Shown here: piece by piece, positions 16,001 to 38,000 of the stretch
Layout: each line of letters opens with the position of its first letter
How positions within the stretch are numbered: the first letter of the stretch is position 1
NCBI GenBank assembly: GCA_964057225.1
Contig: OZ059899.1
Coordinates: forward strand, 4,650,001 to 4,714,000
Source: Auanema rhodensis
Taxonomy: Eukaryota > Animalia > Nematoda
DNA length: 64,000 nucleotides
Reading direction: 5' to 3'
Notes under the pieces: generated by a model
Databases searched by the model: none
What the model was told of the DNA's origin: nothing
The model's input: only the letters and a program-made list of their open reading frames with translations
Program-made: the position numbers and the translations under genes

Positions 16001-18222
16001 CATTTTTCAAACGATCATAACTTATTTTTGTATTAAGCGTTTCTCAATGTAGTATAGTGCATTCGATGCGGAATTTTAAGCTGCGTCGATCTGTGTTATC
16101 AGATTTGCGCTAGCTTAAAAATGCACCGAGATATCAACTGATATAAGTTCACACTTATATCCTCGATTTTCACCCTGAAGAATCAATTTTTTCGTTGAAT
16201 AACATTGTCCATCGTCTTTGCCTTGAAAAAAAAATCTAAGAACACCTACTTTTTGCTAAATTATCTTGAAATTTTTCGAAAAAATTTTTGTCAAAATGTT
16301 TTTGGAAGCAATGTTGAGTGTACATGGAAACTCAACATACACTAATGCATCATTTTTCAAACGATCATAACTGATTTTTGTATCAAGCGTTTCTCAATGT
16401 AGTATAGTGCATTCGATGCGGATTTTTAAGCTGCGTCGATCCGTGTTATCAGATTTGCGCTAGCTTAAAAATGCACCGAGATATCAACTGATATAAGTTC
16501 ACACTTATATCCTCGATTTTCACCCTGAAGAATTAATTTTTTCGTTGAATAATATTGTCCATCGTCTTTGCCTTGAAAAAAGGAATCTAAAAACATCTAC
16601 TTTTTGCTAAATTATTTTGAAATTTTTCGAAAAAATTTTTGTCAAAATGTTTTTGGAAGCAATGTTGAGTGTACATGCAAACTCAACATACACTAATGCA
16701 TCATTTTTCAAACGATCATAACTGATTTTTGTATTAAGCGTTTCTCAATGTAGTATAGTGCATTCGATGCGGATTTTTAAGCTGCGTCGATCTGTGTTAT
16801 CAGATTTGCGCTAGCTTAAAAATGCACCGAGATATCAACTGATATAAGTTCACACTTATATCCTCGATTTTCACCCTGAAGAATCAATTTTATCGTTGAA
16901 TAACATTGTCCATCGTCTTTGCCTTGAAAGAAGAAATCTAAAAACATCTACTTTTTGCTAAATTATTTTGAAATTTTTCGAAAAAATTTTTGTCAAAATG
17001 TTTTTGGAAGCAATGTTGAGTGTACATGGAAACTCAACATACACTAATGCATCATTTTTCAAACGATCATAACTAATTTTTGTATTAAGCGTTTCTCAAT
17101 GTAGTATAGTGCATTCGATGCGGATTTGTAAGCTGCGTCGATCTGTGTTATCAGATTTGCGCTAGCTTAAAAATGCACCGAGATATCAACTGATATAAGT
17201 TCACACTTATATCTTCGATTTTCACCCTGAAGAATTAATTTTTTCGTTGAATAACATTGTCCATCGTCTTCGCCTTGAAAAAAGGAATCTAGAAGCATCT
17301 ACTTTTTGCTAAATTATTTTGAAATTTTTCGAAAAAATTTTTGTCAAAATGTTTTTGGAAGCAATGTTGAGTGTACATGGAAACTCAACATACACTAATG
17401 CATCATTTTTCAAACGATCATAACTGATTTTTGTATCAAGCGTTTCTCAATGTAGTATAGTGCATTCGATGCGGATTTTTAAGCTGCGTCGATCTGTGTT
17501 ATCAGATTTGCGCTAGCTTAGAAATGCACCGAGATATCAACTGATATAAGTTCACACTTATATCCTCGATTTTCACCCTGAAGAATCAATTTTTTCGTTG
17601 AATAACATTGTCCATCGTCTTTGCCTTGAAAAAAGAAATCTAAAAACATCTACTTTTTGCTAAATTATTTTGAAATTTTTCGAAAAAATTTTTGTCAAAA
17701 TGTTTTTGGAAGCAATGTTGAGTGTACATGGAAACTCAACATACACTAATGCATCATTTTTCAAACGATCATAACTGATTTTTGTATTAAGCGTTTCTCA
17801 ATGTAGTATAGTGCATTCGATGCGGATTTTTAAGCTGCGTCGATCTGTGTTATCAGATTTGCGCTAGCTTAAAAATGCACCGAGATATCAACTGATATAA
17901 GTTCACACTTATATCCTCGATTTTCACCCTGAAGAATCAATTTTATCGTTGAATAACATTGTCCATCGTCTTTGCCTTGAAAGAAGAAATCTGAAAACAT
18001 CTACTTTTTGCTAAATTATTTTGAAATTTTTCGAAAAAATTTTTGTCAAAATGTTTTTGGAAGCAATGTTGAGTGTACATGGAAACTCAACATACACTAA
18101 TGCATCATTTTTCAAACGATCATAACTAATTTTTGTATTAAGCGTTTCTCAATGTAGTATAGTGCATTCGATGCGGATTTTTAAGCTGCGTCGATCTGTG
18201 TTATCAGATTTGCGCTAGCTTG

Positions 18223-21200
18223 AAAATGCACCGAGATATCAACTGATATAAGTTCACACTTATATCTTCGATTTTCACCCTGAAGAATTAATTTTTTCGT
18301 TGAATAACATTGTCCATCGTCTTCGCCTTGAAAAAAGGAATCTAGAAGCATCTACTTTTTGCTAAATTATTTTGAAATTTTTCGAAAAAATTTTTGTCAA
18401 AATGTTTTTGGAAGCAATGTTGAGTGTACATGGAAACTCAACATACACTAATGCATCATTTTTCAAACGATCATAACTGATTTTTGTATCAAGCGTTTCT
18501 CAATGTAGTATAGTGCATTCGATGCGGATTTTTAAGCTGCGTCGATCTGTGTTATCAGATTTGCGCTAGCTTAAAAATGCACCGAGATATCAACTGATAT
18601 AAGTTCACACTTATATCCTCGATTTTCACCCTGAAGAATTAATTTTTTCGTTGAATAACATTGTCCATCGTCTTTGCCTTGAAAAAAGGAATCTAGAAGC
18701 ATCTACTTTTTGCTAAATTATTTTGAAATTTTTCGAAAAAATTTTTGTCAAAATGTTTTTGGAAGCAATCTTGAGTGTACATGGAAACTCAACATACACT
18801 AATGCATCATTTTTCAAACGATCATAACTGATTTTTGTATTAAGCGTTTCTCAATGTAGTATAGTGCATTCGATGCGGATTTTTAAGCTGCGTCGATCTG
18901 TGTTATCAGATTTGCGCTAGCTTAAAAATGCACCGAGATATCAATTGATATAAGTTCACACATATATCCTCGATTTTTACCCTGAAGAATGAATTTTTTC
19001 GTTGAATAACATTGTCCATCGTCTTTGCCTTGAAAAAAGGAATCTAAAAACATCTACTTTTTGCTAAATTATTTTGAAATTTTTCGAAAAAATTTTTGTC
19101 AAAATGTTTTTGGAAGCAATGTTGAGTGTACATGGAAACTCAACATACACTAATGCATCATTTTTCAAACGATCATAACTGATTTTTGTATTAAGCGTTT
19201 CTCAATGTAGTATAGTGCATTCGATGCGGATTTTTAAGCTGCGTCGATCTGTGTTATCAGATTTGCGCTAGCTTAAAAATGCACCGAGATATCAACTGAT
19301 ATAAGTTCACACTTATATCCTCGATTTTCACCCTGAAGAATCAATTTTTTCGTTGAATAACATTGTCCATCGTCTTTGCCTTGAAAAAAAAATCTAAAAA
19401 CACCTACTTTTTGCTAAATTATCTTGAAATTTTTCGAAAAAATTTTTGTCAAAATGTTTTTGGAAGCAATGTTGAGTGTACATGGAAACTCAACATACAC
19501 TAATGCATCATTTTTCAAACGATCATAACTGATTTTTGTATCAAGCGTTTCTCAATGTAGTATAGTGCATTCGATGCGGATTTTTAAGCTGCGTCGATCT
19601 GTGTTATCAGATTTGCGCTAGCTTAAAAATGCACCGAGATATCAACTGATATATGTTCACACTTAAATCCTCGATTTTCACCCTGAAGAATTAATTTTTT
19701 CGTTGAATAACATTGTCCATCGTCTTTGCCTTGAAAAAAGAAATCTAGAAGCATCTACTTTTTGCTAAATTATTTTGAAATTTTTCGAAAAAATTTTTGT
19801 CAAAATGTTTTTGGAAGCAATGTTGAGTGTACATGCAAACTCAACATACACTAATGCATCATTTTTCAAACGATCATAACTGATTTTTGTATTAAGCGTT
19901 TCTCAATGTAGTATAGTGCATTCGATGCGGATTTTTAAGCTGCGTCGATCTGTGTTATCAGATTTGCGCTAGCTTAAAAATGCACCGAGATATCAACTGA
20001 TATAAGTTCACACTTATATCCTCGATTTTCACCCTGAAGAATCAATTTTATCGTTGAATAACATTGTCCATCGTCTTTGCCTTGAAAGAAGAAATCTAAA
20101 AACATCTACTTTTTGCTAAATTATTTTGAAATTTTTCGAAAAAATTTTTGTCAAAATGTTTTTGGAAGCAATGTTGAGTGTACATGGAAACTCAACATAC
20201 ACTAATGCATCATTTTTCAAACGATCATAACTAATTTTTGTATTAAGCGTTTCTCAATGTAGTATAGTGCATTCGATGCGGATTTTTAAGCTGCGTCGAT
20301 CTGTGTTATCAGATTTGCGCTAGCTTAAAAATGCACCGAGATATCAACTGATATAAGTTCACACTTATATCTTCGATTTTCACCCTGAAGAATTAATTTT
20401 TTCGTTGAATAACATTGTCCATCGTCTTCGCCTTGAAAAAAGGAATCTAGAAGCATCTACTTTTTGCTAAATTATTTTGAAATTTTTCGAAAAAATTTTT
20501 GTCAAAATGTTTTTGGAAGCAATGTTGAGTGTACATGGAAACTCAACATACACTAATGCATCATTTTTCAAACGATCATAACTGATTTTTGTATTAAGCG
20601 TTTCTCAATGTAGTATAGTGCATTCGATGCGGATTTTTAAGCTGCGTCGATCTGTGTTATCAGATTTGCGCTAGCTTAAAAATGCACCGAGATATCAACT
20701 GATATAATTTCACACATATATCCTCGATTTTCACCCTGAAGAATCAATTTTTTCGTTGAATAACATTGTCCATCGTCTTTGCCTTGAAAAAAGAAATCTA
20801 AAAACATCTACTTTTTGCTAAATTAGTTTGAAATTTTTCGAAGAAATTTTTGTCAAAATGTTTTTGGAAGCAATGTTGAGTGTACATGGAAACTCAACAT
20901 ACACTAATGCATCATTTTTCAAACGATCATAACTGATTTTTGTATCAAGCGTTTCTCAATGTAGTATAGTGCATTCGATGCGGATTTTTAAGCTGCGTCG
21001 ATCTGTGTTATCAGATTTGCGCTAGCTTAAAAATGCACCGAGATATCAACTGATATAAGTTCACACTTATATCCTCGATTTTCACCCTGAAGAATCAATT
21101 TTTTCGTTGAATAACATTGTCCATCGTCTTTGCCTTGAAAAAAGAAATCTAAAAACATCTACTTTTTGCTAAATTATTTTAAAATTTTTCGAAAAAATTT

Positions 21201-24200
21201 TTGTCAAAATGTTTTTGGAAGCAATGTTGAGTGTACATGGAAACTCAACATACACTAATGCATCATTTTTCAAACGATCATAACTGATTTTTGTATTAAG
21301 CGTTTCTCAATGTAGTATAGTGCATTCGATGCGGATTTTTAAGCTGCGTCGATCTGTGTTATCAGATTTGCGCTAGCTTAAAAATGCACCGAGATATCAA
21401 TTGATATAAGTTCACACATATATCCTCGATTTTTACCCTGAAGAATGAATTTTTTCGTTGAATAACATTGTCCATCGTCTTTGCCTTGAAAAAAGGAATC
21501 TAAAAACATCTACTTTTTGCTAAATTATTTTGAAATTTTTCGAAAAAATTTTTGTCAAAATGTTTTTGGAAGCAATCTTGAGTGTACATGGAAACTCAAC
21601 ATACACTAATGCATCATTTTTCAAACGATCATAACTGATTTTTGTATTAAGCGTTTCTCAATGTAGTATAGTGCATTCGATGCGGATTTTTAAGCTGCGT
21701 CGATCTGTGTTATCAGATTTGCGCTAGCTTAAAAATGCACCGAGATATCAACTGATATAAGTTCACACTTATATCCTCGATTTTCACCCTGAAGAATGAA
21801 TTTTTTCGTTGAATAACATTGTCCATCGTCTTTGCCTTGAAAAAAGGAATCTAAAAACATCTACTTTTTGCTAAATTATTTTGAAATTTTTCGAAAAAAT
21901 TTTTGTCAAATTGTTTTTGGAAGCAATGTTGAGTCTACATGGAAACTCAACATACACTAATGCATCATTTTTCAAACGATCATAACTAATTTTTGTATTA
22001 AGCGTTTCTCAATGTAGTATAGTGCATTCGATGCGGATTTTTAAGCTGCGTCGATCTGTGTTATCAGATTTGCGCTAGCTTAAAAATGCACCGAGATATC
22101 AACTGATATAAGTTCACACTTATATCTTCGATTTTCACCCTGAAGAATTAATTTTTTCGTTGAATAACATTGTCCATCGTCTTCGCCTTGAAAAAAGGAA
22201 TCTAGAAGCATCTACTTTTTGCTAAATTATTTTGAAATTTTTCGAAAAAATTTTTGTCAAAATGTTTTTGGAAGCAATGTTGAGTGTACATGGAAACTCA
22301 ACATACACTAATGCATCATTTTTCAAACGATCATAACTGATTTTTGTATTAAGCGTTTCTCAATGTAGTATAGTGCATTCGATGCGGATTTTTAAGCTGC
22401 GTCGATCTGTGTTATCAGATTTGCGCTAGCTTAAAAATGCACCGAGATATCAACTGATATAAGTTCACACATATATCCTCGATTTTCACCCTGAAGAATC
22501 AATTTTTTCGTTGAATAACATTGTCCATCGTCTTTGCCTTGAAAAAAGAAATCTAAAAACATCTACTTTTTGCTAAATTAGTTTGAAATTTTTCGAAAAA
22601 ATTTTTGTCAAAATGTTTTTGGAAGCAATGTTGAGTGTACATGGAAACTCAACATACACTAATGCATCATTTTTCAAACGATCATAACTGATTTTTGTAT
22701 TAAGCGTTTCTCAATGTAGTATAGTGCATTCGATGCGGATTTTTAAGCTGCGTCGATCTGTGTTATCAGATTTGCGCCAGCTTAAAAATGCACCGAGATA
22801 TCAACTGATATAAGTTCACACTTATATCCTCGATTTTCACCCTGAAGAATCAATTTTTTCGTTGAATAACATTGTCCATCGTCTTTGCCTTGAAAAAAGG
22901 AATCTAAAAACATCTACTTTTTGCTAAATTATTTTGAAATTTTTCGAAAAAATTTTTGTCAAAATGTTTTTGGAAGCAATGTTGAGTCTACATGGAAACT
23001 CAACATACACTAATGCATCATTTTTCAAACGATCATAACTAATTTTTGTATTAAGCGTTTCTCAATGTAGTATAGTGCATTCGATGCGGATTTTTAAGCT
23101 GCGTCGATCTGTGTTATCAGATTTGCGCTAGCTTAAAAATGCACCGAGATATCAACTGATATAAGTTCACACATATATCCTCGATTTTCACCCTGAAGAA
23201 TGAATTTTTTCGTTGAATAACATTGTCCATCGTCTTTGCCTTGAAAAAAGGAATCTAAAAACATCTACTTTTTGCTAAATTATTTTGAAATTTTTCGAAA
23301 AAATTTTTGTCAAAATGTTTTTGGAAGCAATGTTGAGTCTACATGGAAACTCAACATACACTAATGCATCATTTTTCAAACGATCATAACTAATTTTTGT
23401 ATTAAGCGTTTCTCAATGTAGTATAGTGCATTCGATGCGGATTTTTAAGCTGCGTCGATCTGTGTTATCAGATTTGCGCTAGCTTAAAAATGCACCGAGA
23501 TATCAACTGATATAAGTTCACACTTATATCTTCGATTTTCACCCTGAAGAATTAATTTTTTCGTTGAATAACATTGTCCATCGTCTTCGCCTTGAAAAAA
23601 GGAATCTAGAAGCATCTACTTTTTGCTAAATTATTTTGAAATTTTTCGAAAAAATTTTTGTCAAAATGTTTTTGGAAGCAATGTTGAGTGTACATGGAAA
23701 CTCAACATACACTAATGCATCATTTTTCAAACGATCATAACTGATTTTTGTATTAAGCGTTTCTCAATGTAGTATAGTGCATTCGATGCGGATTTTTAAG
23801 CTGCGTCGATCTGTGTTATCAGATTTGCGCTAGCTTAAAAATGCACCGAGATATCAACTGATATAAGTTCACACATATATCCTCGATTTTCACCCTGAAG
23901 AATGAATTTTTTCGTTGAATAACATTGTCCATCGTCTTTGCCTTGAAAAAAGGAATCTAAAAACATCTACTTTTTGCTAAATTATTTTGAAATTTTTCGA
24001 AAAAATTTTTGTCAAAATGTTTTTGGAAGCAATGTTGAGTCTACATGGAAACTCAACATACACTAATGCATCATTTTTCAAACGATCATAACTAATTTTT
24101 GTATTAAGCGTTTCTCAATGTAGTATAGTGCATTCGATGCGGATTTTTAAGCTGCGTCGATCTGTGTTATCAGATTTGCGCTAGCTTAAAAATGCACCGA

Positions 24201-27200
24201 GATATCAACTGATATAAGTTCACACTTATATCTTCGATTTTCACCCTGAAGAATTAATTTTTTCGTTGAATAACATTGTCCATCGTCTTCGCCTTGAAAA
24301 AAGGAATCTAGAAGCATCTACTTTTTGCTAAATTATTTTGAAATTTTTCGAAAAAATTTTTGTCAAAATGTTTTTGGAAGCAATGTTGAGTGTACATGGA
24401 AACTCAACATACACTAATGCATCATTTTTCAAACGATCATAACTGATTTTTGTATTAAGCGTTTCTCAATGTAGTATAGTGCATTCGATGCGGATTTTTA
24501 AGCTGCGTCGATCTGTGTTATCAGATTTGCGCTAGCTTAAAAATGCACCGAGATATCAACTGATATAAGTTCACACATATATCCTCGATTTTCACCCTGA
24601 AGAATCAATTTTTTCGTTGAATAACATTGTCCATCGTCTTTGCCTTGAAAAAAGAAATCTAAAAACATCTACTTTTTGCTAAATTAGTTTGAAATTTTTC
24701 GAAGAAATTTTTGTCAAAATGTTTTTGGAAGCAATGTTGAGTGTACATGGAAACTCAACATACACTAATGCATCATTTTTCAAACGATCATAACTGATTT
24801 TTGTATCAAGCGTTTCTCAATGTAGTATAGTGCATTCGATGCGGATTTTTAAGCTGCGTCGATCTGTGTTATCAGATTTGCGCTAGCTTAAAAATGCACC
24901 GAGATATCAACTGATATAAGTTCACACTTATATCCTCGATTTTCACCCTGAAGAATTAATTTTTTCGTTGAATAACATTGTCCATCGTCTTTGCCTTGAA
25001 AAAAGGAATCTAGAAGCATCTACTTTTTGCTAAATTATTTTGAAATTTTTCGAAAAAATTTTTGTCAAAATGTTTTTGGAAGCAATGTTGAGTGTACATG
25101 GAAACTCAACATACACTAATGCATCATTTTTCAAACGATCATAACTGATTTTTGTATTAAGCGTTTCTCAATGTAGTATAGTGCATTCGATGCGGATTTT
25201 TAAGCTGCGTCGATCTGTGTTATCAGATTTGCGCCAGCTTAAAAATGCACCGAGATATCAACTGATATAAGTTCACACTTATATCCTCGATTTTCACCCT
25301 GAAGAATCAATTTTTTCGTTGAATAACATTGTCCATCGTCTTTGCCTTGAAAAAAAAAATCTAAAAACATCTACTTTTTGCTAAATAATTTTAAAATTTT
25401 TCGAAAAAATTTTTGTCAAAATGTTTTTGGAAGCAATGTTGAGTGTACATGGAAACTCAACATACACTAATGCATCATTTTTCAAACGATCATAACTGAT
25501 TTTTGTATTAAGCGTTTCTCAATGTAGTATAGTGCATTCGATGCGGATTTTTAAGCTGCGTCGATCTGTGTTATCAGATTTGCGCCAGCTTAAAAATGCA
25601 CCGAGATATCAACTGATATAAGTTCACACTTATATCTTCGATTTTCACCCTGAAGAATTAATTTTTTCGTTGAATAACATTGTCCATCGTCTTCGCCTTG
25701 AAAAAAGGAATCTAGAAGCATCTACTTTTTGCTAAATTATTTTGAAATTTTTCGAAAAAATTTTTGTCAAAATGTTTTTGGAAGCAATGTTGAGTGTACA
25801 TGGAAACTCAACATACACTAATGCATCATTTTTCAAACGATCATAACTGATTTTTGTATCAAGCGTTTCTCAATGTAGTATAGTGCATTCGATGCGGATT
25901 TTTAAGCTGCGTCGATCTGTGTTATCAGATTTGCGCTAGCTTAAAAATGCACCGAGATATCAACTGATATAAGTTCACACTTATATCCTCGATTTTCACC
26001 CTGAAGAATTAATTTTTTCGTTGAATAACATTGTCCATCGTCTTTGCCTTGAAAAAAGGAATCTAGAAGCATCTACTTTTTGCTAAATTATTTTGAAATT
26101 TTTCGAAAAAATTTTTGTCAAAATGTTTTTGGAAGCAATCTTGAGTGTACATGGAAACTCAACATACACTAATGCATCATTTTTCAAACGATCATAACTG
26201 ATTTTTGTATTAAGCGTTTCTCAATGTAGTATAGTGCATTCGATGCGGATTTTTAAGCTGCGTCGATCTGTGTTATCAGATTTGCGCTAGCTTAAAAATG
26301 CACCGAGATATCAATTGATATAAGTTCACACATATATCCTCGATTTTTACCCTGAAGAATGAATTTTTTCGTTGAATAACATTGTCCATCGTCTTTGCCT
26401 TGAAAAAAGGAATCTAAAAACATCTACTTTTTGCTAAATTATTTTGAAATTTTTCGAAAAAATTTTTGTCAAAATGTTTTTGGAAGCAATGTTGAGTGTA
26501 CATGGAAACTCAACATACACTAATGCATCATTTTTCAAACGATCATAACTGATTTTTGTATTAAGCGTTTCTCAATGTAGTATAGTGCATTCGATGCGGA
26601 TTTTTAAGCTGCGTCGATCTGTGTTATCAGATTTGCGCTAGCTTAAAAATGCACCGAGATATCAACTGATATAAGTTCACACTTATATCCTCGATTTTCA
26701 CCCTGAAGAATCAATTTTTTCGTTGAATAACATTGTCCATCGTCTTTGCCTTGAAAAAAAAATCTAAAAACACCTACTTTTTGCTAAATTATCTTGAAAT
26801 TTTTCGAAAAAATTTTTGTCAAAATGTTTTTGGAAGCAATGTTGAGTGTACATGGAAACTCAACATACACTAATGCATCATTTTTCAAACGATCATAACT
26901 GATTTTTGTATCAAGCGTTTCTCAATGTAGTATAGTGCATTCGATGCGGATTTTTAAGCTGCGTCGATCTGTGTTATCAGATTTGCGCTAGCTTAAAAAT
27001 GCACCGAGATATCAACTGATATATGTTCACACTTAAATCCTCGATTTTCACCCTGAAGAATTAATTTTTTCGTTGAATAACATTGTCCATCGTCTTTGCC
27101 TTGAAAAAAGAAATCTAGAAGCATCTACTTTTTGCTAAATTATTTTGAAATTTTTCGAAAAAATTTTTGTCAAAATGTTTTTGGAAGCAATGTTGAGTGT

Positions 27201-30200
27201 ACATGCAAACTCAACATACACTAATGCATCATTTTTCAAACGATCATAACTGATTTTTGTATTAAGCGTTTCTCAATGTAGTATAGTGCATTCGATGCGG
27301 ATTTTTAAGCTGCGTCGATCTGTGTTATCAGATTTGCGCTAGCTTAAAAATGCACCGAGATATCAACTGATATAAGTTCACACTTATATCCTCGATTTTC
27401 ACCCTGAAGAATCAATTTTATCGTTGAATAACATTGTCCATCGTCTTTGCCTTGAAAGAAGAAATCTAAAAACATCTACTTTTTGCTAAATTATTTTGAA
27501 ATTTTTCGAAAAAATTTTTGTCAAAATGTTTTTGGAAGCAATGTTGAGTGTACATGGAAACTCAACATACACTAATGCATCATTTTTCAAACGATCATAA
27601 CTAATTTTTGTATTAAGCGTTTCTCAATGTAGTATAGTGCATTCGATGCGGATTTTTAAGCTGCGTCGATCTGTGTTATCAGATTTGCGCTAGCTTAAAA
27701 ATGCACCGAGATATCAACTGATATAAGTTCACACTTATATCTTCGATTTTCACCCTGAAGAATTAATTTTTTCGTTGAATAACATTGTCCATCGTCTTCG
27801 CCTTGAAAAAAGGAATCTAGAAGCATCTACTTTTTGCTAAATTATTTTGAAATTTTTCGAAAAAATTTTTGTCAAAATGTTTTTGGAAGCAATGTTGAGT
27901 GTACATGGAAACTCAACATACACTAATGCATCATTTTTCAAACGATCATAACTGATTTTTGTATTAAGCGTTTCTCAATGTAGTATAGTGCATTCGATGC
28001 GGATTTTTAAGCTGCGTCGATCTGTGTTATCAGATTTGCGCTAGCTTAAAAATGCACCGAGATATCAACTGATATAATTTCACACATATATCCTCGATTT
28101 TCACCCTGAAGAATCAATTTTTTCGTTGAATAACATTGTCCATCGTCTTTGCCTTGAAAAAAGAAATCTAAAAACATCTACTTTTTGCTAAATTAGTTTG
28201 AAATTTTTCGAAGAAATTTTTGTCAAAATGTTTTTGGAAGCAATGTTGAGTGTACATGGAAACTCAACATACACTAATGCATCATTTTTCAAACGATCAT
28301 AACTGATTTTTGTATCAAGCGTTTCTCAATGTAGTATAGTGCATTCGATGCGGATTTTTAAGCTGCGTCGATCTGTGTTATCAGATTTGCGCTAGCTTAA
28401 AAATGCACCGAGATATCAACTGATATAAGTTCACACTTATATCCTCGATTTTCACCCTGAAGAATCAATTTTTTCGTTGAATAACATTGTCCATCGTCTT
28501 TGCCTTGAAAAAAGAAATCTAAAAACATCTACTTTTTGCTAAATTATTTTAAAATTTTTCGAAAAAATTTTTGTCAAAATGTTTTTGGAAGCAATGTTGA
28601 GTGTACATGGAAACTCAACATACACTAATGCATCATTTTTCAAACGATCATAACTGATTTTTGTATTAAGCGTTTCTCAATGTAGTATAGTGCATTCGAT
28701 GCGGATTTTTAAGCTGCGTCGATCTGTGTTATCAGATTTGCGCTAGCTTAAAAATGCACCGAGATATCAATTGATATAAGTTCACACATATATCCTCGAT
28801 TTTTACCCTGAAGAATGAATTTTTTCGTTGAATAACATTGTCCATCGTCTTTGCCTTGAAAAAAGGAATCTAAAAACATCTACTTTTTGCTAAATTATTT
28901 TGAAATTTTTCGAAAAAATTTTTGTCAAAATGTTTTTGGAAGCAATCTTGAGTGTACATGGAAACTCAACATACACTAATGCATCATTTTTCAAACGATC
29001 ATAACTGATTTTTGTATTAAGCGTTTCTCAATGTAGTATAGTGCATTCGATGCGGATTTTTAAGCTGCGTCGATCTGTGTTATCAGATTTGCGCTAGCTT
29101 AAAAATGCACCGAGATATCAACTGATATAAGTTCACACTTATATCCTCGATTTTCACCCTGAAGAATGAATTTTTTCGTTGAATAACATTGTCCATCGTC
29201 TTTGCCTTGAAAAAAGGAATCTAAAAACATCTACTTTTTGCTAAATTATTTTGAAATTTTTCGAAAAAATTTTTGTCAAATTGTTTTTGGAAGCAATGTT
29301 GAGTCTACATGGAAACTCAACATACACTAATGCATCATTTTTCAAACGATCATAACTAATTTTTGTATTAAGCGTTTCTCAATGTAGTATAGTGCATTCG
29401 ATGCGGATTTTTAAGCTGCGTCGATCTGTGTTATCAGATTTGCGCTAGCTTAAAAATGCACCGAGATATCAACTGATATAAGTTCACACTTATATCTTCG
29501 ATTTTCACCCTGAAGAATTAATTTTTTCGTTGAATAACATTGTCCATCGTCTTCGCCTTGAAAAAAGGAATCTAGAAGCATCTACTTTTTGCTAAATTAT
29601 TTTGAAATTTTTCGAAAAAATTTTTGTCAAAATGTTTTTGGAAGCAATGTTGAGTGTACATGGAAACTCAACATACACTAATGCATCATTTTTCAAACGA
29701 TCATAACTGATTTTTGTATTAAGCGTTTCTCAATGTAGTATAGTGCATTCGATGCGGATTTTTAAGCTGCGTCGATCTGTGTTATCAGATTTGCGCTAGC
29801 TTAAAAATGCACCGAGATATCAACTGATATAAGTTCACACATATATCCTCGATTTTCACCCTGAAGAATCAATTTTTTCGTTGAATAACATTGTCCATCG
29901 TCTTTGCCTTGAAAAAAGAAATCTAAAAACATCTACTTTTTGCTAAATTAGTTTGAAATTTTTCGAAAAAATTTTTGTCAAAATGTTTTTGGAAGCAATG
30001 TTGAGTGTACATGGAAACTCAACATACACTAATGCATCATTTTTCAAACGATCATAACTGATTTTTGTATTAAGCGTTTCTCAATGTAGTATAGTGCATT
30101 CGATGCGGATTTTTAAGCTGCGTCGATCTGTGTTATCAGATTTGCGCCAGCTTAAAAATGCACCGAGATATCAACTGATATAAGTTCACACTTATATCCT

Positions 30201-32955
30201 CGATTTTCACCCTGAAGAATCAATTTTTTCGTTGAATAACATTGTCCATCGTCTTTGCCTTGAAAAAAGGAATCTAAAAACATCTACTTTTTGCTAAATT
30301 ATTTTGAAATTTTTCGAAAAAATTTTTGTCAAAATGTTTTTGGAAGCAATGTTGAGTCTACATGGAAACTCAACATACACTAATGCATCATTTTTCAAAC
30401 GATCATAACTAATTTTTGTATTAAGCGTTTCTCAATGTAGTATAGTGCATTCGATGCGGATTTTTAAGCTGCGTCGATCTGTGTTATCAGATTTGCGCTA
30501 GCTTAAAAATGCACCGAGATATCAACTGATATAAGTTCACACATATATCCTCGATTTTCACCCTGAAGAATGAATTTTTTCGTTGAATAACATTGTCCAT
30601 CGTCTTTGCCTTGAAAAAAGGAATCTAAAAACATCTACTTTTTGCTAAATTATTTTGAAATTTTTCGAAAAAATTTTTGTCAAAATGTTTTTGGAAGCAA
30701 TGTTGAGTCTACATGGAAACTCAACATACACTAATGCATCATTTTTCAAACGATCATAACTAATTTTTGTATTAAGCGTTTCTCAATGTAGTATAGTGCA
30801 TTCGATGCGGATTTTTAAGCTGCGTCGATCTGTGTTATCAGATTTGCGCTAGCTTAAAAATGCACCGAGATATCAACTGATATAAGTTCACACTTATATC
30901 TTCGATTTTCACCCTGAAGAATTAATTTTTTCGTTGAATAACATTGTCCATCGTCTTCGCCTTGAAAAAAGGAATCTAGAAGCATCTACTTTTTGCTAAA
31001 TTATTTTGAAATTTTTCGAAAAAATTTTTGTCAAAATGTTTTTGGAAGCAATGTTGAGTGTACATGGAAACTCAACATACACTAATGCATCATTTTTCAA
31101 ACGATCATAACTGATTTTTGTATTAAGCGTTTCTCAATGTAGTATAGTGCATTCGATGCGGATTTTTAAGCTGCGTCGATCTGTGTTATCAGATTTGCGC
31201 TAGCTTAAAAATGCACCGAGATATCAACTGATATAAGTTCACACATATATCCTCGATTTTCACCCTGAAGAATGAATTTTTTCGTTGAATAACATTGTCC
31301 ATCGTCTTTGCCTTGAAAAAAGGAATCTAAAAACATCTACTTTTTGCTAAATTATTTTGAAATTTTTCGAAAAAATTTTTGTCAAAATGTTTTTGGAAGC
31401 AATGTTGAGTCTACATGGAAACTCAACATACACTAATGCATCATTTTTCAAACGATCATAACTAATTTTTGTATTAAGCGTTTCTCAATGTAGTATAGTG
31501 CATTCGATGCGGATTTTTAAGCTGCGTCGATCTGTGTTATCAGATTTGCGCTAGCTTAAAAATGCACCGAGATATCAACTGATATAAGTTCACACTTATA
31601 TCTTCGATTTTCACCCTGAAGAATTAATTTTTTCGTTGAATAACATTGTCCATCGTCTTCGCCTTGAAAAAAGGAATCTAGAAGCATCTACTTTTTGCTA
31701 AATTATTTTGAAATTTTTCGAAAAAATTTTTGTCAAAATGTTTTTGGAAGCAATGTTGAGTGTACATGGAAACTCAACATACACTAATGCATCATTTTTC
31801 AAACGATCATAACTGATTTTTGTATTAAGCGTTTCTCAATGTAGTATAGTGCATTCGATGCGGATTTTTAAGCTGCGTCGATCTGTGTTATCAGATTTGC
31901 GCTAGCTTAAAAATGCACCGAGATATCAACTGATATAAGTTCACACATATATCCTCGATTTTCACCCTGAAGAATCAATTTTTTCGTTGAATAACATTGT
32001 CCATCGTCTTTGCCTTGAAAAAAGAAATCTAAAAACATCTACTTTTTGCTAAATTAGTTTGAAATTTTTCGAAGAAATTTTTGTCAAAATGTTTTTGGAA
32101 GCAATGTTGAGTGTACATGGAAACTCAACATACACTAATGCATCATTTTTCAAACGATCATAACTGATTTTTGTATCAAGCGTTTCTCAATGTAGTATAG
32201 TGCATTCGATGCGGATTTTTAAGCTGCGTCGATCTGTGTTATCAGATTTGCGCTAGCTTAAAAATGCACCGAGATATCAACTGATATAAGTTCACACTTA
32301 TATCCTCGATTTTCACCCTGAAGAATTAATTTTTTCGTTGAATAACATTGTCCATCGTCTTTGCCTTGAAAAAAGGAATCTAGAAGCATCTACTTTTTGC
32401 TAAATTATTTTGAAATTTTTCGAAAAAATTTTTGTCAAAATGTTTTTGGAAGCAATGTTGAGTGTACATGGAAACTCAACATACACTAATGCATCATTTT
32501 TCAAACGATCATAACTGATTTTTGTATTAAGCGTTTCTCAATGTAGTATAGTGCATTCGATGCGGATTTTTAAGCTGCGTCGATCTGTGTTATCAGATTT
32601 GCGCCAGCTTAAAAATGCACCGAGATATCAACTGATATAAGTTCACACTTATATCCTCGATTTTCACCCTGAAGAATCAATTTTTTCGTTGAATAACATT
32701 GTCCATCGTCTTTGCCTTGAAAAAAAAAATCTAAAAACATCTACTTTTTGCTAAATAATTTTAAAATTTTTCGAAAAAATTTTTGTCAAAATGTTTTTGG
32801 AAGCAATGTTGAGTGTACATGGAAACTCAACATACACTAATGCATCATTTTTCAAACGATCATAACTGATTTTTGTATTAAGCGTTTCTCAATGTAGTAT
32901 AGTGCATTCGATGCGGATTTTTAAGCTGCGTCGATCTGTGTTATCAGATTTGCGC
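18223..32955 (+). repeat. Tandem duplication of a 21-monomer (7370-bp) block
   Basis: Rare variants recur exactly 7370 bp apart: A9+CACCT 19385/26755, GATATAATTT 20701/28071, AAATTGTTTTT 21911/29281, CTAAATAATTTTAAA 25381/32751. Confidence 0.92.
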
Positions 32956-35000
32956 TAGCTTAAAAATGCACCGAGATATCAATTGATATAAGTTCACACA
33001 TATATCCTCGATTTTTACCCTGAAGAATGAATTTTTTCGTTGAATAACATTGTCCATCGTCTTTGCCTTGAAAAAAGGAATCTAAAAACATCTACTTTTC
33101 GCTAAATTATTTTGAAATTTTTCGAAAAAATTTTTGTCAAAATGTTTTTGGAAGCAATCTTGAGTGTACATGGAAACTCAACATACACTAATGCATCATT
33201 TTTCAAACGATCATAACTGATTTTTGTATTAAGCGTTTCTCAATGTAGAATAGTGCATTCGATGCGGATTTTTAAGCTGCGTCGATCTGTGTTATCAGAT
33301 TTGCGCTAGCTTAAAAATGCACCGAGATATCAACTGATATAAGTTCACACTTATATCCTCGATTTTCACCCTGAAGAATGAATTTTTTCGTTGAATAACA
33401 TTGTCCATCGTCTTTGCCTTGAAAAAAGGAATCTAAAAACATCTACTTTTTGCTAAATTATTTTGAAATTTTTCGAAAAAATTTTTGTCAAAATGTTTTT
33501 GGAAGCAATGTTGAGTCTACATGGAAACTCAACATACACTAATGCATCATTTTTCAAACGATCATAACTGATTTTTGTATTAAGCGTTTCTCAATGTAGT
33601 ATAGTGCATTCGATGCGGATTTTTAAGCTGCGTCGATCTGTGTTATCAGATTTGCGCTAGCTTAAAAATGCACCGAGATATCAACTGATATAAGTTCACA
33701 CTTATATTCTCGATTTTCACCCTGAAGAATTAATTTTTTCGTTGAATAACATTGTCCATCGTCTTTGCCTTGAAAAAAGAAATCTAAAAACATCTACTTT
33801 TTGCTAAATTATTTTGAAATTTTTCGAAAAAATTTTTGTCAAAATGTTTTTGGAAGCAATGTTGAGTGTACATGGAAACTCAACATACACTAATGCATCA
33901 TTTTTCAAACGATCATAACTGATTTTTGTATTAAGCGTTTCTCAATGTAGTATAGTGCATTCGATGCGGATTTTTAAGCTGCGTCGATCTGTGTTATCAG
34001 ATTTGCGCTAGCTTGAAAATGCACCGAGATATCAACTGATATAAGTTCACACATATATCCTCGATTTTCACCCTGAAGAATTAATTTTTTCGTTGAATAA
34101 CATTGTCCATCGTCTTTGCCTTGAAAAAAGAAATCTAAAAACATCTACTTTTTGCTAAATTATTTTGAAATTTTTCGAAAAAATTTTTGTCAAAATGTTT
34201 TTGGAAGCAATGTTGAGTGTACATGGAAACTCAACATACACTAATGCATCATTTTTCATACGATCATAACTGATTTTTGTATTAAGCGTTTCTCAATGTA
34301 GTATAGTGCATTCGATGCGGATTTTTAAGCTGCGTCGATCTGTGTTATCAGATTTGCGCTAGCTTAAAAATGCACCGAGATATCAACTGATATAAGTTCA
34401 CACTTATATCCTCGATTTTCACCCTGAAGAATTAATTTTTTCGTTGAATAATATTGTCCATCGTCTTTGCCTTGAAAAAAGGAATCTAAAAACATCTACT
34501 TTTTGCTAAATTATTTTGAAATTTTTCGAAAAATTTTTTGTCAAAATGTTTTTGGAAGCAATGTTGAGTGTACATGGAAACTCAACATACACTAATGCAT
34601 CATTTTTCAAACGATCATAACTGATTTTTGTATTAAGCGTTTCTCAATGTAGTATAGTGCATTCGATGCGGATTTTTAAGCTGCGTCGATCCGTGTTATC
34701 AGATTTGCGCTAGCTTAAAAATGCACCGAGATATCAACTGATATAAGTTCACACTTATATCCTCGATTTTCACCCTGAAGAATTAATTTTTTCGTTGAAT
34801 AATATTGTCCATCGTCTTTGCCTTGAAAAAAGGAATCTAAAAACATCTACTTTTTGCTAAATTATTTTGAAATTTTTCGAAAAAATTTTTGTCAAAATGT
34901 TTTTGGAAGCAATGTTGAGTGTACATGGAAACTCAACATACACTAATGCATCATTTTTCAAACGATCATAACTAATTTTTGTATTAAGCGTTTCTCAATG

Positions 35001-35035
35001 TAGTATAGTGCGATTTTTTTTTTTTCGAAAAATTT
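35001..35035. other. Inversion junction between oppositely oriented satellite arms
   Basis: TAGTATAGTGC|G|A-T12-CGAAAAATTT. The forward monomer stops at monomer position 272 (35011). The reverse monomer begins at about monomer position 147, with its T6 run extended to T12 (35014-35025). Confidence 0.97.
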
Positions 35036-38000
35036 TAAAATAATTTAGCAAAAAGTAGATGTTTTTAGATTCCTTTTTTCAAGGCAAAGACGATGGACAA
35101 TGTTATTCAACGAAAAAATTAATTCTTCAGGGTGAAAATCGAGGATATGAGTGTGAACTTATATCAGTTGATATCTCGGTGCATTTTTAAGCTAGCGCAA
35201 ATCTGATAACACAGATCGACGCAGCTTAAAAAACCGCATCGAATGCACTATACTACATTTAGAAACGCTTAATACAAAAATAAGTTATGATCGTTTGAAA
35301 AATGATGCATTAGTGTATGTTGAGTTTCCATGTACACTCAACATTGCTTCCAAAAACATTTTGACAAAAATTTTTTCGAAAAATTTCAAAATAATTTAGC
35401 AAAAAGTAGATGTTTTTAGATTCCTTTTTTCAAGGCAAAGACGATGGACAATGTTATTCAACGAAAAAATTAATTCTTCAGGGTGAAAATCGAGGATATA
35501 AGTGTGAACTTATATCAGTTGATATCTCGGTGCATTTTTAAGCTAGCGCAAATCTGATAACACAGATCGACGCAGCTTAAAAATCCGCATCGAATGCACT
35601 ATACTACATTGAGAAACTCTTAATACAAAAATCAGTTATGATCGTTTGAAAAATGATGCATTAGTGTATGTTGAGTTTCCATGTACACTCAACATTGCTT
35701 CCAAAAACATTTTGACAAAAATTTTTTCGAAAAATTTCAAAATAATTTAGCAAAAAGTAGATGTTTTTAGATTCCTTTTTTCAAGGCAAAGACGATGGAC
35801 AATGTTATTCAACGAAAAAATTAATTCTTCAGGGTGAAAATCGAGGATATAAGTGTGAACTTATATCAGTTGATATCTCGGTGCATTTTTAAGCTAGCGG
35901 AAATCTGATAACACGGATCGACGCAGCTTAAAAATCCGCATCGAATGCACTATACTACATTGAGAAACGCTTAATACAAAAATAAGTTATGATCGTTTGA
36001 AAAATGATGCATTAGTGTATGTTGAGTTTCCATGTACACTCAACATTGCTTCCAAAAACATTTTGACAAAAATTTTTTCGAAAATTTTCAAAATAATTTA
36101 GCAAAAAGTAGATGTTTTTAGATTCCTTTTTTCAAGGCAAAGACGATGGACAATGTTATTCAACGAAAAAATTAATTCTTCAGGGTGAAAATCGAGGATA
36201 TAAGTGTGAACTTATATCAGTTGATATCTCGGTGCATTTTTAAGCTAGCGCAAATCTGATAACACAGATCGACGCAGCTTAAAAATCCGCATCGAATGCA
36301 CTATACTTCATTGAGAAACTCTTAATACAAAAATCAGTTATGATCGTTTGAAAAATGATGCATTAGTGTATGTTGAGTTTCCATGTACACTCAACATTGC
36401 TTCCAAAAACATTTTGACAAAAATTTTTTCGAAAAATTTCAAAATAATTTAGCGAAAAGTAGATGTTTTTAGATTCCTTTTTTCAAGGCAAAGACGATGG
36501 ACAATGTTATTCAACGAAAAAATTAATTCTTCAGGGTGAAAATCGAGGATATAAGTGTGAACTTATATCAGTTGATATCTCGGTGCATTTTTAAGCTAGC
36601 GGAAATCTGATAACACGGATCGACGCAGCTTAAAAATCCGCATCGAATGCACTATACTACATTGAGAAACGCTTAATACAAAAATAAGTTATGATCGTTT
36701 GAAAAATGATGCATTAGTGTATGTTGAGTTTCCATGTACACTCAACATTGCTTCCAAAAACATTTTGACAAAAATTTTTTCGAAAATTTTCAAAATAATT
36801 TAGCAAAAAGTAGATGTTTTTAGATTCCTTTTTTCAAGGCAAAGACGATGGACAATGTTATTCAACGAAAAAATTAATTCTTCAGGGTGAAAATCGAGGA
36901 TATAAGTGTGAACTTATATCAGTTGATATCTCGGTGCATTTTTAAGCTAGCGCAAATCTGATAACACAGATCGACGCAGCTTAAAAATCCGCATCGAATG
37001 CACTATACTACATTGAGGAACGCTTAATACAAAAATAAGTTATGATCGTTTGAAAAATGATGCATTAGTGTATGTTGAGTTTCCATGTACACTCAACATT
37101 GCTTCCAAAAACATTTTGACAAAAATTTTTTCGAAAAATTTCAAAATAATTTAGCAAAAAGTAGATGTTTTTAGATTCCTTTTTTCAAGGCAAAGACGAT
37201 GGACAATGTTATTCAACGAAAAAATTAATTCTTCAGGGTGAAAATCGAGGATATAAGTGTGAACTTATATCAGTTGATATCTCGGTGCATTTTTAAGCTA
37301 GCGCAAATCTGATAACACGGATCGACACAGCTTAAAAATCCGCATCGAATGCACTATACTACATTGAGAAACGCTTAATACAAAAATAAGTTATGATCGT
37401 TTGAAAAATGATGCATTAGTGTATGCTGAGTTTCCATGTACACTCAACATTGCTTCCAAAAACATTTTGACAAAAATTTTTTCGAAAATTTTCAAAATAA
37501 TTTAGCAAAAAGTAGATGTTTTTAGATTCCTTTTTTCAAGGCAAAGACGATGGACAATGTTATTCAACGAAAAAATTAATTCTTCAGGGTGAAAATCGAG
37601 GATATAAGTGTGAACTTATATCAGTTGATATCTCGGTGCATTTTTAAGCTAGCGCAAATCTGATAACACAGATCGACGCAGCTTAAAAATCCGCATCGAA
37701 TGCACTATACTACTTTGAGAAACTCTTAATACAAAAATCAGTTATGATCGTTTGAAAAATGATGCATTAGTGTATGTTGAGTTTCCATGTACACTCAACA
37801 TTGCTTCCAAAAACATTTTGACAAAAATTTTTTCGAAAAATTTCAAAATAATTTAGCAAAAAGTAGATGTTTTTAGATTCCTTTTTTCAAGGCAAAGACG
37901 ATGGACAATGTTATTCAACGAAAAAATTGATTCTTCAGGTTGAAAATCGAGGATATATGTGTGAACTTATATCAGTTGATATCTCGGTGCATTTTTAAGC

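Follow-up and report, generated by a model that had tools for sequence, protein, structure and literature searches.

Strand switches inside satellite arrays are well described for human chromosomes. A survey of ~8,000 human centromeres revealed hundreds of them in beta-satellite and HSat3 arrays, at random positions and in numbers that scale with array length, and they were interpreted as by-products of array expansion and dynamics (10.64898/2026.07.22.740206). The active human CEN1 array, composed of alpha-satellite higher-order repeats, contains an inversion of ~1.4 Mb (10.64898/2026.07.22.740206). A second group of related structures are the inverted Alu repeats studied in yeast, fragile quasi-palindromes whose geometry allows hairpins or cruciforms in principle. 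In the yeast assays cited here, recombination between inverted repeats is about 300-fold lower with a 100-bp spacer than with one of 12 bp, and mismatches near the centre reduce it further (PMC10164571).

Among nematodes that eliminate DNA, the satellites of eliminating Caenorhabditis species have units of 150-160 bp (PMC13370393), and units of 11, 23 and 65 nt are found in Mesorhabditis. The genome of Auanema rhodensis (strain APS4, named A. rhodense in the preprint) was published as a 180.9-Mb HiFi/hifiasm/Hi-C assembly, whose repeats were clustered by strand-invariant k-mers with no discussion of their orientation (10.64898/2026.08.27.747507). DNA breaks in this species occur at a 29-nt palindromic motif (10.64898/2026.08.27.747507). 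The assembly analysed here (GCA_964057225.1) has 180,911,798 bases and includes a nematode-type mitochondrial COX1 in which TGA stands for Trp. The germline-restricted tandem repeats AT-1 and AT-2 of this same genome are among the closest known counterparts of the array described below: they too form multi-megabase arrays, in terminal autosomal blocks of several chromosomes.

The locus lies in a window of 64 kb (positions 4,650,001-4,714,000 of the 21.47-Mb contig OZ059899.1, hereafter C7), which consists entirely of one 351-bp satellite with 32% GC. The repeats on its two sides belong to the same family, face in opposite directions and meet at a clean joint. This abrupt flip within one homogeneous array, with no foreign DNA at the joint, is what is seen in the human arrays, from which the locus differs by its host, a nematode, by its 351-bp repeat and by a setting that appears to be germline-restricted, somatically eliminated and not centromeric. 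Satellite strand switches are thus already known and this junction is another example. It is probably a genuine and old break-and-rejoin junction in germline-restricted satellite DNA that now acts as a passive barrier to homogenisation. By itself it is of little importance, as such switches are known and many exist in this genome; it provides a base-resolved case, from DNA that is presumably germline-restricted, in a nematode whose soma lacks ~61% of the genome.

Anatomy of the junction

The preliminary description of this DNA had reported that the array changes strand once. TRF arrays, BLAST strands and base skew all place a single change point in the window. The forward array (plus strand, 1-35011) comprises 99.8 copies with 97% matches and the reverse array (minus strand, 35020-64000) 82.6 copies with 98% matches according to TRF; both arms are also seen in tiling with BLAST, and in alignment to the consensus monomer the forward match likewise stops at 35011. 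A single monomer compared by BLAST to the window yields 101 plus-strand matches, the last at 35015, and 83 minus-strand matches, the first at 35027. The sign of both the GC and the AT skew flips between 34 and 36 kb.

Alignment to the consensus defines the joint at base level. The forward array fits the consensus up to monomer position 133, which is position 35011 of the window; its last unit, on the plus strand at 34879-35011, is therefore incomplete and covers monomer positions 1-133 only. The reverse array fits from 35020, where it begins at monomer position 7 and is read downwards. Between the arms there are only the 8 nt GATTTTTT at 35012-35019, delimited by alignment to the forward and reverse consensus, so that the reported lack of unique or mobile DNA between them holds. 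This filler matches the consensus of neither arm, and together with the T6 of the right arm it creates a run of T12 where the usual monomer has T6. From its letters it could correspond to forward positions 144-150 following a skip of 10 nt; it could also be a product of T-tract slippage or of microhomology. The junction is read from the published hifiasm contig, and a 28-mer spanning it occurs once in the 181-Mb genome when up to 2 mismatches are allowed. The window contains no N runs or gap markers, its only letters being A, C, G and T, and the junction is therefore not a scaffold join but sits within the contig.

The monomer does not have the features of a gene: ORFs of at least 90 aa, tRNAs and Rfam matches (E<=0.1) are all absent, and a coding or RNA-gene origin is rejected on these negatives. 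Literature searches with 18-20-mers of the monomer or with the 351-bp satellite size gave only an unrelated plant paper.

When the two arms are folded onto each other, the best axis is i+j=69905, with 96.4% complementarity across 3 kb, and every other axis gives 35% or less. This axis includes the pair C34878:G35027 that had been proposed. A 12-nt palindrome, TTTTTCGAAAAA, is common to all 351-bp monomers, both in individual sequences and in the consensus. One copy (34873-34884) lies at the symmetry axis C34878/G34879 of the left arm and another (35021-35032, centred on C35026/G35027) at the start of the right arm, and these copies on the symmetry axis account for a few extra paired bases at the spacer. 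Inward pairing ends at A34885:T35020 and leaves 134 nt unpaired (34886-35019), in agreement with the spacer of ~130 bp first estimated; this spacer consists of the incomplete last unit of the left arm, which has no partner on the right, together with the filler. The predicted DNA fold of 34860-35045 features a 26-bp stem closing around the spacer loop.

Seen at larger scale, the symmetry is limited. Ungapped complementarity reaches 97-99% per monomer over 23 monomers (~8.1 kb) only, after which an indel shifts the register. The arms are also unequal in size, the right one ending at C7:4,731,261 for a total of 46.2 kb and the left orientation extending ~2.8 Mb leftwards. The giant near-palindrome with arms of at least 29 kb, which had been presented as a feature in its own right, is not supported as such: it is the automatic result of flipping a homogeneous array, its arms being no more alike than one would expect of any pair of segments from this satellite, with no mirror register. 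The fragility expected from such a structure fares no better. Unlike in the fragile yeast Alu repeats, the spacer here is 134 nt and the arms diverge by 2.2%, which by analogy with the yeast data cited above would mean that the junction is not a strong substrate for hairpin or cruciform formation. On the same data, the structure would be tolerable and its persistence would need no special explanation.

Variant domains on the two sides

Between the left and the right consensus monomer there are only 2 differences in 351 positions, and 10 polymorphic columns separate the arms. Variants found only on the left are 107C (23% of monomers), 306A (40%) and the linked pair 313G/316G (33%). Those found only or mainly on the right are 96T (52%), 118A (23%) and the linked pair 339A/340A (22%). 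A 21-mer with 339A/340A has 19 exact matches in the whole genome, all on the minus strand and all within C7:4,690,294-4,714,186. The 21-mer with 313G/316G has 169, all on the plus strand; the 100 matches listed span C7:4,493,151-4,598,862 and 33 matches are in the left arm of the window. New variants have spread locally on each side and never cross the junction.

These numbers are small when set against the whole satellite. A conserved 20-mer of the monomer is found 62,642 times in forward and 56,594 times in reverse orientation, which amounts to about 119,000 monomers or ~42 Mb, 23% of the assembly, nearly equally divided between strands by this count. In samples taken along the contig, the bulk of the C7 array is of a general type (96A/257T/306G/313A). 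By the same sampling, the left-arm type makes up some 190-215 kb immediately left of the switch, and the right-arm type gives way to the general type toward the edge of the array. The earlier suggestion of a stably maintained inversion point inside the array is well founded in this respect, as the junction looks long-maintained and private variants stay on their own side.

The homogenisation of monomers within the arms, and never across, makes the switch a passive barrier between two variant domains. The switch point halts the spread of new repeat variants, found in 19 copies on one side and 169 on the other among ~119,000, and their confinement bears on how arrays homogenise. The k-mers unique to the junction, together with those private to each arm, are markers for assembly checks and for tracking this block through elimination.

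An assembly misjoin, in which real but non-adjacent pieces of 351-bp array were connected in opposite orientation, for example by a chimeric read, would also produce an abrupt change of variant profile at the junction. The eliminated repeat blocks of this genome, over 90% repeat, have a HiFi coverage of ~29-fold compared to 236-fold for retained DNA, and 11 Mb of repeat-rich sequence was left unplaced (10.64898/2026.08.27.747507). The T12 homopolymer with its 8-nt filler is unusual, too. Several observations nevertheless make this explanation unlikely. A join inside a contig devoid of Ns must exist in at least one read, and the usual HiFi fold-back artefact has mirror-identical arms, which are absent here. 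The authors of the assembly report that most reads from repeat blocks map uniquely through small-scale variation (10.64898/2026.08.27.747507). Equally clean switches are found at several other places, and on either side the private variants form one uninterrupted domain that reaches up to the junction.

Array layout and germline-restricted context

On C7 the satellite covers about 0.8-4.73 Mb, roughly a 3.9-Mb array, according to sampling along the contig. In this sampling the monomers are on the minus strand between 0.8 and 1.887 Mb, on the plus strand between 1.887 and 4.685 Mb and on the minus strand again at 4,685,020-4,731,261. A map of orientation domains would be a small addition to the published genome description with its strand-invariant clustering. 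The reverse block that begins in the window is the last block of the array and meets unique DNA at monomer phase 187.

The plus stretch is broken at three sampled places. One of these is an insertion of ~17 kb, from C7:4,563,513 to about 4,580,500, with several ORFs of 200-444 aa, one of which codes for an integrase core and a chromodomain (Pfam rve 3.2e-09, Chromo 2.6e-08). These domains point to a probable chromoviral or Maverick/Polinton-like origin of the insertion. An identical private satellite variant flanks it on both sides.

The same satellite has at least two other clean switches. The pattern search for switches covered gaps of 130-160, a range that does not include the gap of the window junction (164), and is no census of them. 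At C7:1,886,768/9 the joint is blunt, the minus array ending at monomer position 71 and the plus array starting at 155. At C3:~436,991 (0.437 Mb) the plus array ends at position 45, which falls in the loop of a short hairpin predicted there, and the minus array starts at 95, with a 1-nt overlap. Further orientation changes are implied on C1 and elsewhere on C3. There is no evidence for a breakpoint hotspot or hairpin apex common to the switches: their phases differ (133|7, 45|95 and 71|155), and in the window junction the break of the reverse arm falls at the margin of the TTTTTCGAAAAA palindrome and not at its centre.

An inversion with a partner breakpoint had been among the origins first proposed. 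The switch at C7:1,886,768/9 is not its reciprocal in monomer phase: a single 2.8-Mb inversion for both C7 junctions, starting from 71|155, predicts 70|154 and the phases observed in the window are 133|7. If the second break of a simple inversion had fallen at the array edge, the reverse block should end at phase 134; it ends at 187. Reciprocity could be hidden by later deletions.

The ends of C7 (1-1500 and 21,465,005-21,466,504) are composed of another satellite, in which the AT-1 FISH probe of the preprint (ACATACCAAGTGCACATCACGTGTACAT) can be read and whose orientation is opposite at the two ends. TTAGGC telomere repeats are absent from the 1,500 bp examined at each end. The 351-bp repeat presumably is AT-2; the main text of the preprint gives no AT-2 unit size (10.64898/2026.08.27.747507). 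From its position and its fit to the terminal blocks described, the array in the window appears to be germline-restricted and eliminated from the soma.

A near-perfect palindrome is found ~50-61 kb to the right of the switch, at C7:4,735,030-4,746,269, with arms of 5,564 nt, 1 mismatch and a spacer of 112 nt. Its centre is a degenerate fragment resembling the 351-bp satellite, which itself switches strand. TTAGGC/GCCTAA seeds are mirrored inside the palindrome at C7:4,740,292/345 and 4,740,949/1,002, and the former mark a candidate break site, ~55 kb right of the switch. As the switch is distal to this candidate site, it would lie in germline-only DNA.

This setting bears on the possibility that the junction is a functional element, either the mark of a centromere or chromatin sub-domain or the source of a hairpin RNA from which small RNAs would arise that silence or mark the eliminated satellite. 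The switch does coincide with a sharp boundary between variant domains, and the satellite accounts for about 23% of the germline genome and appears to be eliminated. A transcript crossing the junction would be predicted to fold into a very long double-stranded RNA, as the modelled stem closes. A role of this kind is nonetheless highly improbable. The centromere sub-domain put forward at first loses its support if, as it seems, the array is germline-restricted DNA that the soma discards, and the preprint has no occurrence of "centromer" (10.64898/2026.08.27.747507). Switches occur at many places, at differing phases and with no shared motif, and their human counterparts are randomly placed by-products (10.64898/2026.07.22.740206); the monomer, with no ORF, tRNA or Rfam match, does not argue for function either. 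From this absence of indications the junction seems to have no function of its own.

A particular version of this idea would have germline read-through at convergent switches generate long hairpin double-stranded RNA from the 351-bp satellite, and thereby small RNAs that mark all its copies. In this way ~42 Mb of satellite, spread over several autosomes, would be designated heterochromatin or destined for removal from the soma, and the switch would be a functional trigger instead of a scar. There is very little chance that this is so.

Mirror order and the originating event

A fold-back event copies a broken end in reverse, and the head-to-head arms and short spacer of the junction have this classic geometry. 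Both arms were cut into monomers and aligned, and each left monomer i, counted outward, was compared with each right monomer j. The mean number of differences per 351-bp monomer is 7.74 between left and right monomers (97.8% identity), 6.95 among left monomers and 6.07 among right monomers; similarity between the arms thus does not exceed that among the copies of one arm. The mirror diagonal has a mean of 7.62 differences versus 7.64-7.84 at offsets of -6 to +6. The permutation test of this diagonal gave p=0.13, and the mirror partner has a mean rank of 33 out of 82. The five innermost monomer pairs differ at 8, 3, 6, 6 and 7 bases.

Every diagonal was also scanned, in mirror and anti-mirror order, for stretches of 4-12 similar monomers, and none stood out convincingly from shuffles. 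One of its eight settings (anti-mirror, 6 monomers) has a nominal, uncorrected p=0.015, a signal that is gone with runs of 8 or 12. Applied to the left arm by itself, the scan recovers a duplication of 21 monomers with 0 differences, which shows that the method is able to detect such structure.

The fold-back-type palindrome 55 kb away shares with the junction its head-to-head arms and a spacer of about 110-135 nt, but it has strict mirror order with a single mismatch while the arms of the switch lack mirror order and are 2.2% apart. A recent fold-back inverted duplication, in which a broken or hairpin-capped end was copied back so that the right arm mirrors the left, is therefore extremely improbable in spite of that near-perfect neighbour, given that no mirror register exists in direct alignment (offset 0), with shifts of up to 6 monomers or along any diagonal, that the innermost pairs already differ, that the arms are less similar than monomers within one arm and that each arm has private variants at frequencies of 20-50%. 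The fold-back scar of the preliminary description has left no mirror signature and, as a recent event, is refuted by these tests. An ancient fold-back erased by turnover is not distinguishable from an inversion.

The break-and-rejoin origin favoured here would start with a rearrangement at double-strand breaks that joined a forward array broken after position 133 to a reverse array broken at position 7. The event might be an inversion or the insertion of a piece in inverted orientation, or else a fold-back that has since lost its mirror signature. End-joining or template switching in the T-tract may have sealed the joint, leaving 8 T-rich bases. Since then, unequal exchange has duplicated and homogenised monomers within each arm and not across the junction. 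The repair pathway, the age and the neutrality of the junction are deduced in this scheme, which is built on the anatomy of the joint, the missing mirror order, the private variants and the recurrence of switches.

The left arm has a tandem segmental duplication at 17335-33029 of the window, with a unit of 21 monomers, an offset of 7,370 bp and ~2.1 copies. Its identity is 99.76% and some runs of at least 12 monomers are identical. It is the result of a recent unequal exchange inside one arm.
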